Shown: positions 4,790-45,277, counted from the first letter of the stretch. The stretch is 64,000 nt of DNA from Octopus sinensis (GCF_006345805.1 NC_043010.1:4340001-4404000); one strand, 5' to 3'. Numbers and translations are program-made. The notes: generated by a model not told the origin, from the sequence alone.

Positions 4790-5092
4790 AAAACAGGAGA
4801 TTGGAAAAATGTTTGGTATTATTTATTCACTATTATACATGTTTCATTTGCAAGAAAGAGTTACAAAATTGTACATGTAGTAGAAACATGTAAGATATCT
4901 CTTGTTTGAAATTCTTCAGACAGAGAATCAAATATTATTATGTATTATTTGATATTTTCTGTCTGAAGAATTTTTAATTAGAAATATCTCATATGTTTCT
5001 CCTGCATGTACAATTTTGTAACTCCTATTAGCACATGAAACATGTGTAATGGTAAATAAATAATAGCCCAAACTTTTCCAATCTCTCGTTTT
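4790..5092. repeat. Fold-back element with arms of about 150 bp, a loop of about 15 nt and roughly 80% arm identity
   Basis: GAGTTACAAAATTGTACATG and AATTCTTCAGACAGA in the left arm are mirrored by TCTGTCTGAAGAATT and CATGTACAATTTTGTAACTC in the right arm. Confidence 0.88.
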
Positions 5093-5299
5093 CATACATA
5101 TATATATGCATCCATATGTATACGTGTATCTCTTTCTCTCTCTCGCCATATATATATATATATATAATCTGTGTGTGTTTGTGTAATAAGACAAAATATG
5201 CATCTATAGAGAGAGAAAGAGAGAGAGATACAAGAACACATACACACACATGCAGTTATGTTTATATATATATTTCTATATATATATATAGATATATAT

Positions 5300-5430
5300 A
5301 ATAGAAGAAATGAGGTACTCAGAAATCTGGATGGTTTTATATTTAGATATTTATTAGCATGTTACATATTTTTATAAATCATATATCATATATTAGCGCT
5401 TTCGTCCACTCTAGTGGAGTCTTCAAATTG
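5300..5430. repeat. Dispersed repeat, second copy at 46998-47140, possibly Penelope-derived
   Basis: Both copies begin AGAAGAAATGAGGTACTCAGAAA and share ...ATTAGCGCTTTC...CTAGTGG. Confidence 0.7.
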
Positions 5431-5879
5431 AATTAACTTTTGCAAGAATTTTGACTCTTTTTTTAGTATTATTGAGTGTGTAGGGTGGGGAGAGATATAA
5501 GATAGTACAAGAGGGTGAGGAATGTGGAGAAAGTGAGAGAGAGCATGTGTGTGTATGTATGTAACTGAAAGGGATGTTAAAGAAAAAGAAGGAAAGGAAG
5601 AAGGAGAGAAAGAAGAAAAAATTGTTGATATTTTTGCAGCTGGTCAGTTTGCCAATAATAAGCGATTCTTGGCTTTTAGTAATGGCAAATTCAGCTGGTC
5701 ACTCCAAGGGGAACAAAATGTCACTTTTCAAAAAATTGTCTGGATTTACTTTTTATCATTGTCTTGTGAGAGAGTGTGTGTGTGTGTATGTGCGTGTGTG
5801 TGTGTGGGTGTCTGTACATCATCTCCAAACCTTGGCCACAGTGAAATGACTGAAACAAGTAAAAGAGTATGTATATATA

Positions 5880-5990
5880 GGCATCCAGTCATAGAAAACA
5901 TATCAAATCAGACTGGAACCTGATGCCAGCTCTGGTCAAACCATCCAACCCATGCCAGCATGGAAAACAGACTTTAAATGATGATAATAA
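5880..5990 (+). mobile_element. RTE-type LINE 3' tail fragment
   Basis: AACCCATGCCAGCATGGAAAACAGAC...TGATGAT terminus. Confidence 0.65.
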
Positions 5991-7734
5991 TATATATATA
6001 TATGTATATATATATATATATATATATATATATATATATATATATATATAAACAATTGCATGCAGTCTGCTATGAGACCAGGACCTACCATAATCAGGGA
6101 ACTCAAATGCAGGATTACATTCCTAGAATAAGGTCAGTGCATGACCTTTTAGGCTAATATGAATACTGATTTATACATGCACGTATTACTAAAACGATGA
6201 CAATCTGCAGACAACTTTTAGGATGAGTTCTGCAACAATTTTGAATAAGAGTTCCAGTAACTATGTTGCTTCTGTGGACGACATTTGTCGTCAGCCATCG
6301 AACTATTTGCTCTCAACTATAGTCACCAAACTGTATTAAGCTAATGGCAAAACTTTAAGCAATCCAATGTTACTTACATTAAGAAAATTACCTCTATATA
6401 ACGGTGAGCTGCTCCCAGGTTGAAAGCTCTAAGACACAGCTCCATTATGTAAAGAACGGGTGTATGAATTTATATATGGAAGATCCTGGAAGTAAGTGGT
6501 AGCACCAAACTTTGATATTGAGAGCTATACCAGTCATCATACCAGTTACCATGGCTGAGTGCTGAAGGTTCCCATTCTTTCCCAGATACTGCAAAAGCTT
6601 AAAGTGTGTCTGTGTATATGTTTGTATGTGCATTCTTGCTGTCTATTTACATCCATGCACACAAAATATGTCATTTGGCCTGCTTGTCTGTGTTGGTGTC
6701 TGTATGCGGTTTCTGCATATATTTGTGTGTGTGTATGTGTGTGTATTTGTGTGTGTGTGTGATTGTATATGTGTATTCTTTGACTTAAAATTTAGCTGTA
6801 TGAAGCCACTACCACCTTTCCCCACTTTTCTACACACCCACTCTACTGTACAGCCTTCTGGTTTGACCATGTACCCCCATACATCACATCCCTATCTCAA
6901 TAATAATTACTTCGCTAAGCACTTTGCCTCTCCTGTATACATCACTCAGCAATCCTAATTGACCTTCAAAGGAAAAATACTTAAGCCATAAAAAAGTTCA
7001 TTCAGCCACATCTTAAATCCCATCTCACATAAAAGGGTTTTTCTTATTCCTGCAAATAACCCAATTACCATTCTTAGATAAATACCGGAAGGAAAAACCA
7101 AAACAAAAAAAGGAAGACACAACAAAAAAAAAAGCCTATTTATTTCATGACTTCTCTTGTCCACAAAAACAAGCAAAAATAGAAACTTTCTACAAAAAAT
7201 GTTAACTTACTCCAAATCACACACATCCAAGCTAAGTCCAACTCCTCCAAACAAAATCCTGCACCTTATGAATACATCAATTTACCAATGTTTTTAATAC
7301 TTTGAGAATTCCAGCCCAGGATGAAACTACTGGTCACTGAGCCATTGAACCTTTCATTTCCAATGCTAAATATACTTAAGTCCCTCTGTCTATATATGTG
7401 TGTATGTGTGTGTATTTGTGTGTGTATTTGTATATATATGCACTTACATAAGTGGGTGTATATATGTGTGGTATGTTTATGTGTATGTGGGACTTGACCA
7501 TTTCCCAGTGTTTTGAATGTTAAAATACCTAGAATTCTAATGACTCCTACAACAGATTACTGATGTGTGTTTGTGTTGTGTGTGTTGGTGTGTGTATAGA
7601 TAGATAGATACATACGAACATACATGCATACATACATACATACATACATACATACACAACATATGTTTATAAGCAATATTAATAAAGACTAGACGAGATA
7701 CCCAGCATTACTCAGGATTAAGACGGCATAGTTT

Positions 7735-7975
7735 TTCTATTGGTTTACTTGTTTCAGTCACGTGACTGTGGCCTCGCTGGAATGCTGCCTTCAGTTGAAC
7801 AAATTAACCCTAGGATTTATTCTTTGTAAGCCTAGTACTTATTCTATCGGTCTCTTTTGCCGAACCGCTAAGTTACGGGGATGTAAGACAGCAACATTAG
7901 TTGTCAAACGATGGTGGAGGTACAAACATGGAGGATTCATGCTAAGACACATGCATGTGCACTCACACAAATATC
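7735..7975 (-). mobile_element. Family-A SINE, 3' half
   Basis: TTTACTTGTTTCAGTCA...CCTAGTACTTATTCTATCGGTCTCTTTTGCCGAACCGCTAAG. Confidence 0.85.
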
Positions 7976-43152: not shown

Positions 43153-43550
43153 ACTCTTTACTCTTTTACACTTTTACTTGTTTCGGTCATTTGACTGTGG
43201 CCATGCTGGAGCACCACCTTTAGTTGAGCAAATCGACCCCAGGACTTATTCTTTGTAAGCCTAGTACTTGTTCTATCAGTCTCTTTTGCTGAACCACTAA
43301 GTAACGGGGACATAAACACACCAGCATCGGTTGTCAAGTGATGCTGGGAGGATAAACACAGACACACAAACATACACACACATATATATATACGGCGGGC
43401 TTCTTTCAGTTTCCATCTACCAAATCCACTTATAAGACTTTGGTCAGCCCAAAGCTATAGTAGAAGACACTTGCCCAAGGTGCCATGCAGTAGGACTGAA
43501 CCCGGAACCATATGGTTGGTAAGCAAGCTACTTACCACACAGCCACTCCT
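43153..43550 (-). mobile_element. Family-A SINE, full length
   Basis: End-to-end match to the family. Confidence 0.9.
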
Positions 43551-44117
43551 ATTATATATTTATATTTTATGTGTGCGTTTTAATATTTTGCTTAGGTATT
43601 GTGATGCTAACAAGCTGGTGTAGAACTCAATAAGTATGCCTCTGAAGGAAGTGTTGGTCAAGTGAAAAGTGGTAATAAGAGAAGAGGTGGCAATGGAATA
43701 AATGATTATCTTATGAACTTTGTTAGCATACAATTGGTTCCACTATAAGATGTGGTGGACTCACAGTTGAGTGGCTGAGTAACTCTTTACAGAGCTTTGT
43801 GCATGTGTCTATGTGTAAGATGTTGAATTAGCAAATGTCTCAGTCTGCAAAAATTGATAACTCTCCACTAAAATAAATACTTTTGTTTGATTAATCTTTC
43901 ATTTGTTTATTTTATTTTTTTTAACTTGTTTCTATAATTGGACGGTGGTCATGCTAGGGCAATGCCCTGAATGGTTTTTCAGTCAATCAAATCAACTCCA
44001 ATACTTATTTTAAGACTAGTTCCCACTTTAACTGAAAGGATGAAACATTCTGTTCCTTAACAGGTTAGTAAATGTTCTGGTATTTTGTTTTAACCAAATC
44101 AGAAAAAACAAATTGTA

Positions 44118-44208
44118 AACAGTTATCGCCAAGCTAATATGGCAGTCCATAAATATAGGACGAAAGTTGCCGTTTATGGACTGCCATATTAGCTTGGCGA
44201 TAACTGTT
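44118..44208. repeat. Perfect 36-bp inverted repeat with a 19-nt loop (91-nt hairpin)
   Basis: AACAGTTATCGCCAAGCTAATATGGCAGTCCATAAA and its exact reverse complement. Confidence 0.97.
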
Positions 44209-44399
44209 AATATCTAGTACTGCTGCCGTAGTCTCCTTCAGAGAGACTTAGAAATAATAATATTTCTAATTCTAAACAATTAAATAGAAATGAGTGTCCA
44301 TGCTTTATATTCAGCTTGTACATAGTTGCTTGACTGGCTGGAAATAGCATCTACATCTCCTTTAAATCACATCCCACTGCCTAAAAATTAGAAAGGAGT

Positions 44400-44845
44400 C
44401 AGTCATAGTTTTGTGTTCAGTCCCACTGTATAGCACTTGGGAAAGTGTCTTCTACTCCAGCTCTGGCTGATCAAATCCTTACGTATTTGGTAGATGTAAA
44501 CTGAAAGAAGCCTGTCATACATACATACATACATACATACATACATACATACATACATACATGCATACATACATATATACATGCATACATACATGCATAC
44601 ATGCATACATACATACATACATACATACATACATACATACATACATAGTTGAAAATGAGCATCACCATCACACATGCACTGTCCTTTATTTTCCAATCTT
44701 TTGTGTTGGTCATGGGGGAAATATTACCTTACTTGGAAACAGAATGATGTTTGACAACAAGAAGACCATTTGACCATTGAAAATCTGCCTCTTTAAATTT
44801 CACCAAACTCATGGTAGTATGGAAAAGTGGACTTTAAAACGATGC
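44400..44845 (+). mobile_element. Chimeric SINE: family-A head, (TACA)n, different body and RTE-type tail
   Basis: GTTCAGTCCCACTG head; GGAAATATTACCTTACTTGGAAACA body (also near 34450); ATGGAAAAGTGGACTTTAAAACGATG tail. Confidence 0.65.
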
Positions 44846-45277
44846 AGTTCAGTGAAAAGAGCCTGATAGAATAAGAACTAGTCTTAAAATAAGTATTGGA
44901 GTTGATTTGATTGACTGAAAGACCATTCAGGGCATTGCCCTAGCATGACTGCCGTCCAATTATAGAAACAAGTAAAAAAAATAATAAACAAACAAATGAA
45001 AGATTAATCATATATGATTTGTCCCTTCGCTAGTTGAATGTCTGAATGGAGATAAAATATTTCAGAAAGAGAATTCTTTCTGGATTTTCATTTGTGCATG
45101 AATATTCTTCAGATAGGTTTCGGATTCAATTGTGTAGAAAATTGGAATGGACAATTATCTTTTCCATCAGGCTCACATTTCAATACATTGTCCAATAAAT
45201 GATTGTGAGTACAAGCGACTTCCATTTTTTCTCTGCTGATCTGGAATAGGGAATCTTCCGGTATGAAATGGTATCCC

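Follow-up and report, generated by a model that had tools for sequence, protein, structure and literature searches.

Six inverted repeats in a putative giant protocadherin intron of Octopus sinensis form a heterogeneous set at background density

The DNA stretch analyzed in the current work (the window) encompasses 64,000 nucleotides of the Octopus sinensis genome (GCF_006345805.1, NC_043010.1:4340001-4404000) and contains a single long open reading frame (ORF), which is located on the minus strand at 59191-61638 and specifies a protocadherin. Six pairs of inverted repeats (here named P1 to P6) had been reported between positions 4790 and 45010 in a first-pass annotation, which proposed either that these pairs form RNA stems able to steer editing, splicing or back-splicing of the protocadherin transcript, or that they represent template-switch scars in a rearranging gene cluster. 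The analysis described here indicates that the six inverted repeats are probably by-products of ordinary repeat turnover in the octopus genome, rather than the outcome of one process tied to this locus.

Residues 1-804 of the encoded protein are 100% identical to XP_029645575.1 (protocadherin beta-13-like isoform X1, Octopus sinensis, 946 aa), and the corresponding exon 1 is followed by a canonical splice donor (CAG/GTAAGT, at 59221/59220). Neither the last 142 aa of XP_029645575.1 nor the alternative 15-aa end of isoform X2 has a match on either strand of the window. The annotated O. sinensis gene spans 136,967 nt, and on this gene model (which represents annotation, not expression data) positions 1-59220 of the window constitute protocadherin intron 1, which on the model extends over no less than 59 kb and probably exceeds 100 kb. 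The orthologue of Argonauta hians (locus L007) consists of an 806-codon exon 1, a 63-kb intron 1 and then two small C-terminal exons, while the orthologue of O. bimaculoides has a gene range of 132.8 kb; the Octopus gene ranges of 137 and 133 kb suggest an Argonauta-like layout with an even longer intron. The gene model places 1-59220 in intron 1, and therefore the premise that a protocadherin pre-mRNA runs through 4790-45010 holds on this model and on the structure of the Argonauta gene.

All six of the reported inverted pairs were recovered by self-BLAST and gapped alignment of the arms, at coordinates that were exact or a few bases off (Table 1). They make up a heterogeneous mix of microsatellite, SINE-derived (short interspersed nuclear element) and hairpin-shaped repeats. 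The assertion that most of them copy local sequence is only partly right: it does not apply to P2, which is simple sequence, to the arms of P5, which derive from a SINE-like repeat, or to the P1 arm, which has a relative on another scaffold. The search for further copies of the arms employed a sample of 0.37 Mb of octopod DNA, corresponding to approximately 0.014% of a genome of approximately 2.7 Gb; the absence of further copies from this sample is weak evidence, as a family numbering as many as a few thousand copies would still escape it.

Table 1 Coordinates of the protocadherin exons, the six inverted pairs and associated repeats (window positions unless preceded by a locus name)
Feature	Coordinates	Strand	Description
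Protocadherin exon 1	59221-61632	-	aa 1-804 of XP_029645575.1
P1	4782-5100		319-nt near-complete palindrome; arms 4782-4937 / 4943-5100, 82% identity, 5-nt loop
P2	8979-9084		(TGTA)n to (TACA)n microsatellite junction, 81% self-complementary
P3 left arm	22732-23083	+	352 nt; 21-nt insertion and expanded (CA)n tract relative to right arm
P3 right arm	25452-25760	-	309 nt
P4	37067-37309		243-nt hairpin; arms 37067-37170 / 37207-37309, 90.5% identity, 36-nt loop
P4 candidate 12-nt target-site duplication, left copy GAAACTTGCAAA	37031-37042	+	partner GAATCTTGCAAA at 37341-37352
P5 left arm	43888-44022	-	inverted copy of last 135 nt of SINE-like element, A-rich tail included, 5'-truncated
P5 right arm	44875-45010	+	terminal 136 nt of diverged SINE-like copy
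Diverged SINE-like copy	44404-45010	+	body, (CATA)n tract 44516-44647, 3' domain
P6	44118-44208		91-nt hairpin; arms 44118-44153 / 44173-44208, 36/36 perfect, 19-nt loop
Reference SINE-like copy	10096-10504	+	
SINE-like inverted pair	28497-29351		28497-28850 / 28983-29350, 132 nt apart, 83% identity, nearly full-length
Argonauta orthologue exons	L007:10001-12418, 75417-75572, 76332-76703		
Argonauta counterparts of conserved non-coding blocks, in order of the blocks in the text	L007:17646-17908, 15741-15894, 15459-15563, 9174-9302		

In order to compare the density of inverted pairs in the window with that found elsewhere, one pipeline was applied throughout, based on BLAST with a minimum arm length of 35 nt, a minimum identity of 78% and a spacer of at most 3 kb, and with removal of microsatellite-like arms; a pair was designated low-copy when its arms had at most one other copy. 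The six control loci comprised four O. sinensis protocadherin loci (L001-L004, 238 kb), three of which share the chromosome of the window (at 3.9, 6.2 and 57.8 Mb) while the other belongs to an unplaced scaffold, a locus on another O. sinensis chromosome containing a reverse-transcriptase-like gene (L005, 23 kb), and a locus of O. vulgaris (L006, 21 kb) that adjoins a gene for a nuclear receptor. The window contains four low-copy inverted pairs in 64 kb, or 6.2 per 100 kb (five with P5 added), as compared to 10-12 such pairs in the 282 kb of the controls, or 3.5-4.3 per 100 kb (Poisson P about 0.3, or 0.15 with P5). One low-copy pair is carried by L005, i.e. by a non-protocadherin locus on another chromosome, and across the whole window at all distances 1228 inverted self-matches (high-scoring segment pairs) were obtained versus 1287 direct ones. 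The density of inverted pairs thus equals that of the controls, with nothing special to this locus, matching density being the first half of the outcome which the first-pass annotation had itself named as contrary to its reading. The control count is if anything too low, the complexity filter having dropped a palindrome at L001:22197-22553. This 357-nt palindrome, which lies within an intron belonging to a different protocadherin gene of O. sinensis and is unique in the sample, has 99%-identical arms around a 2-nt centre, and represents an assembly artefact or else a fold-back of very recent origin.

A SINE-like repeat of approximately 400 bp represents a major component of the window, where it was detected at 20 loci (18 copies), 10 per strand, and accounts for 8.8% of the bases; 36 such loci are present at the control loci. 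Its consensus carries a B-box-like sequence (GGTTCAGTCCC) in the head, an internal TA/TG microsatellite and a 3' end reading ...AAACAAGTAAAAGAGTAAAAGAG, and the tail of the repeat reads ...GAAACAAGTAAAAGAG. The repeat is short, non-coding, highly repeated and dispersed and has a simple 3' end, as is the case for SINEs, while ARAGORN detected no tRNA in the whole window, and Rfam returned no match at gathering score. Both arms of P5, which are 94.9% identical, can be aligned with the SINE-like consensus in its 3' domain; the diverged copy that ends in the right arm shares about 70% identity with this domain of the main family. About nine multi-copy inverted pairs of the SINE-like repeat with spacers of at most 3 kb are also present, none of which had been listed by the first-pass annotation. 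The nearly full-length pair among them (Table 1) is potentially a stronger former of double-stranded RNA (dsRNA) than most of the listed pairs. A larger inverted segmental duplication, considered for 10.1-11.1 kb versus 19.0-19.9 kb, was rejected: two dispersed families are adjacent at both positions and the intervening sequence cannot be aligned.

The simple-sequence junction that constitutes P2 matches hundreds of microsatellite tracts across the window and is adjoined by a 42-nt direct duplication (9080-9121). Long (TA)n/(TATACA)n tracts at 18050-18326, 20622-20848 and 52595-52807 are self-complementary over at least 200 nt, and represent simple-sequence palindromes similar to P2.

Three of the pairs (P1, P4 and P6; 319, 243 and 91 nt) are compact hairpins whose stop-free frames, of at most 64 aa, have no homologues. 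Both P1 arms match, at 76-79% identity, one 117-nt single-arm segment on an unplaced scaffold unlinked to the window (L002:26272-26388), which, as is P1, is preceded by a TG/TA microsatellite; because of this relative, the P1 arm is assigned, by sequence similarity, to a dispersed repeat. A shuffle-tested scan of the P1 flanks found no target-site duplication beyond chance, and a 12-mer beside the left arm (reached by 1% of shuffles) was discarded as a target duplication, given that it lies within the right arm itself. P4 lies next to a SINE-like copy (36673-37011), on the 3' side of the latter, and is surrounded by a candidate target-site duplication of 12 nt with one mismatch, a length of match reached by 1% of shuffles, whose copies lie 24 and 31 nt outside the palindrome. 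For P6, a 3-nt direct repeat (TAA) possibly flanks a 35-bp version of the stem. No further copy of P3, P4 or P6 was found in the window, in the five O. sinensis and one O. vulgaris control loci, or in the Argonauta orthologue. Two additional searches proved of little use: a chimeric protein query composed of arm translations of P1, P3, P4 and P6, when compared to assembly ORFs, yielded 4821 word-sharing candidates, none with E<=10, and was uninformative, while a 20-mer of the P6 stem had one exact match among Joint Genome Institute (JGI) metagenomes, located in a bacterial serine hydroxymethyltransferase gene and of the order expected by chance.

Mobile palindromic families with target duplications exist in the O. 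sinensis genome, as evidenced by the control loci. One such family, whose members measure approximately 380 nt and have an (ATT)n/(ATC)n tract at their centre, is represented by L002:90971-91350 (380 nt), L003:6573-7443 and L002:21635-21787; the copy at L003:6573-7443 harbors the SINE of approximately 400 bp in its loop, and direct repeats of 12-13 bp, which no shuffle equalled, flank two copies of the family (AGATGAAT(A/G)ACAA and AGAAACCATGTT). Another palindrome (L002:44112-44322) has a 70% identical relative at L004:44797-45041, and an Argonauta palindrome (L007:81017-81417) has about 21 other copies in 87 kb. Because its candidate duplication has the arrangement and the length seen in the control palindromic family, P4 is probably a mobile element of this type. 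Outside the six pairs, the sequence at 41076-41397 matches at least four Argonauta sites at 70-83% identity (L007:30960-31111, 52233-52482, 55031-55304 and 60755-60893), and appears to be a repeat family common to Octopus and Argonauta.

The arms of P3 are 81.6% identical when gaps are included and 94% identical at ungapped columns, and are separated by a spacer of 2368 nt which contains a full SINE-like copy (23470-23871) in addition to older SINE-like debris. No target-site duplication was found around the pair or around either single arm. The presence of a transposase remnant inside P3 was considered and rejected, the ORFs of the spacer being either SINE-derived or featureless.

If the six pairs are indeed by-products of repeat turnover, a strand switch within a microsatellite would give P2, whereas P5 would consist of a SINE-like 3' end and an inverted, 5'-truncated copy thereof, with the approximately nine pairs of the main family likewise having SINE-derived arms. 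P1, P4 and P6 would be small hairpin elements of the foldback type or of the type of miniature inverted-repeat transposable elements (MITEs), and P3, with arms of approximately 330 nt around 2.4 kb, may be a decayed element bearing long terminal inverted repeats, or else an inverted duplication of local sequence into which a SINE subsequently inserted. The likeness of P1, P4 and P6 to MITE or foldback elements lies in their short length (91-319 nt), their non-coding nature and their almost wholly palindromic structure, while they differ from such elements in that no second copy of P4 or P6 was found in the sample, and in that only P4 has a candidate duplication, which is located 24-31 nt outside the palindrome. 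Classical target-site duplications are TA for Tc1/mariner, TWA for PIF and 8 bp for hAT elements, and the duplications of 12-13 bp in the control family fit no classical MITE superfamily. No consequence for protocadherin coding, splicing or circularization is inferred.

The possibility of a regulatory role was assessed from the position, conservation and pairing potential of the arms. None of P1 to P6 encloses or flanks an exon, the pair nearest to exon 1 is 14 kb away from it, and none of the non-simple inverted pairs spans exon 1, with arms beyond 61638 on one side and beyond 59191 on the other. Because no pair encloses an exon, the proposed role in back-splicing has no anatomical basis. The arms of P1 to P6 have no match in the orthologous Argonauta locus, where exon 1 aligns at 83% and the regions of the arms have diverged too far for alignment. 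Near exon 1, conserved and collinear non-coding blocks with 75-88% identity to Argonauta are present at 58208-58457 (84-88%), 58555-58697, 58709-58815 and 61888-62000 (see Table 1 for their counterparts), and 48174-48351 is a possible further block (corresponding to L007:24770-24958). These blocks contain indels that are not multiples of three, do not overlap the reported inverted repeats, and are candidate regulatory elements beside exon 1. With regard to pairing, the transition mismatches between arms would produce G:U pairs in 15 cases in plus-strand RNA and in 16 cases in minus-strand (transcribed) RNA, in addition to 21 transversions and 59 gap columns. Considering that the G:U mismatches are not biased by strand, nothing points to preservation of pairing within the transcript, and arm identities of 82-100% with indels are as would result from neutral decay of events of different age.

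Folding of the transcribed strand as RNA yields almost uninterrupted stems for P1, P4 and P6, of -152.5, -139.8 and -63 kcal/mol, respectively, with fold z-scores of -21.8, -21.2 and -14.4, as compared to only -4 for the microsatellite P2. The pairs are therefore far beyond chance for shuffled sequence, yet within the background of the octopus genome. These in silico duplexes agree with the earlier suggestion that the arms would form long stems if transcribed. It is predicted that the arms would pair into dsRNA when the intron is transcribed, and promiscuous hyper-editing by ADAR (adenosine deaminase acting on RNA) is likely, as is known genome-wide for octopus repeats. Among the 19 species surveyed by Porath et al., octopus displayed the strongest hyper-editing signal, and an exceptionally high proportion of its genomic loci can pair with neighboring sequence to give long, nearly perfect dsRNA (PMC5625713). 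About 83% of the adenosine-to-inosine (A-to-I) sites of metazoans are located in repeats that have an inverted copy close by (Zhang et al., PMC9989829).

Several of the above observations sit uneasily with ordinary repeat turnover and were weighed together with the alternatives that they favor. Family membership is unproven for P3, P4 and P6, each without a second copy in 0.37 Mb, and a convincing target-site duplication is missing from P1, P3, P5 and P6, as it is from most low-copy hairpins of the controls; the lack of such duplications fits local fold-back duplication as well as it fits decayed transposons. P3, P5, P6 and perhaps P1 and P4 may thus be local inverted duplications generated by template switching (fold-back or snap-back synthesis, or quasi-palindrome correction) as a genome-wide process. 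This explanation draws on the uniqueness of the P3, P4 and P6 arms, on the perfect 36-bp stem of P6, and on the fact that most control hairpins, including the palindrome at L001:22197-22553, have neither target-site duplications nor relatives. It also draws on P5, in which the left arm precisely reproduces the last 135 nt, tail included, of the SINE-like element 852 nt away, the two arms being approximately 95% identical to each other while the best other copy in the sample reaches at most 76%; because of this disparity, one copying event appears more likely for P5 than two independent insertions. Template switching has to contend with the palindromic families bearing clear target-site duplications in the same genome, with the relative of P1 elsewhere and the 12-nt candidate duplication of P4, and with the small size of the sample, in which, as noted above, even sizeable families would be missed. 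The explanation is considered unlikely for this set of pairs as a whole, while local fold-back duplication stays a live explanation for part of the six. Products of quasi-palindrome formation, fork stalling and template switching (FoSTeS) or microhomology-mediated break-induced replication (MMBIR) resemble P3, P5 and P6 in having arms that are adjacent, unique in the sample and without target-site duplication, one P5 arm plainly being the resident copy; the difference is that such a process would be genome-wide and not the mark of a rearranging cluster. Template-switch scars, as put forward in the first-pass annotation, may account for P3, P5 and P6, yet would not be a cluster-specific feature, since a pair of the same kind occurs at the non-protocadherin locus on another chromosome.

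The composition of the comparison set and the orientation of the SINE-like copies also count against an ordinary background. Five of the seven comparison loci (the six controls and the Argonauta locus) are themselves protocadherin genes, with non-protocadherin DNA amounting to only 44 kb, which is the principal caveat of the density comparison. The SINE-like copies of the window (n=18, from 987 to 51501) alternate in orientation at 13 of 17 neighbor switches, and those within 3 kb of one another form 11 inverted pairs versus 1 direct pair; the corresponding values for the seven comparison loci are 18 of 35 switches, and 8 inverted versus 7 direct pairs. This alternation (one-sided binomial P of approximately 0.025) was noticed post hoc. 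A non-neutral arrangement, in which a high dsRNA content of the giant intron is maintained, perhaps to serve as an ADAR sink or to supply hairpin-derived small RNAs in neurons, with young perfect hairpins such as P6 recurring, is regarded as very improbable. The related notion that the stems are functional RNA elements, which recruit ADAR or juxtapose splice sites and so tune editing, splicing or back-splicing, is just as doubtful: the region is intronic on the gene model, the stems are very stable in silico, octopus edits heavily (PMC5625713) and the SINE-like orientation alternates more than expected, but the density equals that of the controls, the nearest of the reported pairs is remote from exon 1 with no exon enclosed or flanked, the arms are not conserved in Argonauta though other intronic blocks are, and neither the G:U distribution on the transcribed strand nor the indel-containing arms point to constraint. 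Considering this control-like density, the lack of an enclosed exon, of conservation in Argonauta and of a G:U bias, the locus-specific or steering role that had been proposed is unsupported. The explanation to which we assign the least credence is that the palindromes are assembly artefacts derived from chimeric fold-back long reads. PacBio reads underlie the O. sinensis assembly, going by a title cited in PMC13282606, and P6 and the palindrome at L001:22197-22553 are 99-100% perfect; however, for P1, P3, P4 and P5 an artefact is ruled out by arms that differ by 5-18% in addition to indels, P6 at 91 nt is far below the scale of a read fold-back, and similar structures are present in the independently assembled Argonauta genome.

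Ordinary repeat turnover, the preferred explanation, places the six pairs in proximity to several well-known systems. Inverted Alu pairs, documented as editing substrates in human (PMC526178), are likewise oppositely oriented copies of an abundant short retroelement within a few kb of each other in an intron, with predicted formation of imperfect dsRNA; unlike Alu, the octopod element is of approximately 400 bp and contains an internal microsatellite, and only P5 of the six listed pairs is SINE-derived. A palindromic and heavily edited repeat has been described in frog (PMC5625713), and 66% of the O. vulgaris genome consists of repeats, with 11.6% SINE and with annotated terminal inverted repeat (TIR), Mutator and MITE families (PMC13282606). 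The intronic repeats that promote circular RNA formation also are long complementary intronic sequences in one pre-mRNA, but that mechanism requires arms on either side of an exon, while here both arms are always located in one intron. With respect to a microRNA (miRNA) or other hairpin-RNA gene, P6 matches no described RNA family (Rfam, gathering score). Precursors of miRNAs do not typically carry a perfect 36-bp stem.

The finding represents a local case of known facts, i.e. that inverted-copy repeats are abundant in octopus and are the main substrates of hyper-editing, and by itself it matters little. Its useful outcomes are mostly negative, in that the inverted repeats are not to be read as a protocadherin regulatory device or as scars of cluster rearrangement. 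The diversity of cephalopod protocadherins arises from whole-gene duplication and not from variable exons that are spliced to shared exons (PMC9068888). The layout encountered here, which is directly apparent in Argonauta and implied for two Octopus species, consists of one large exon, a giant intron of at least 63 kb and two small C-terminal exons, and explains why much repeat-rich DNA is located inside protocadherin transcription units.

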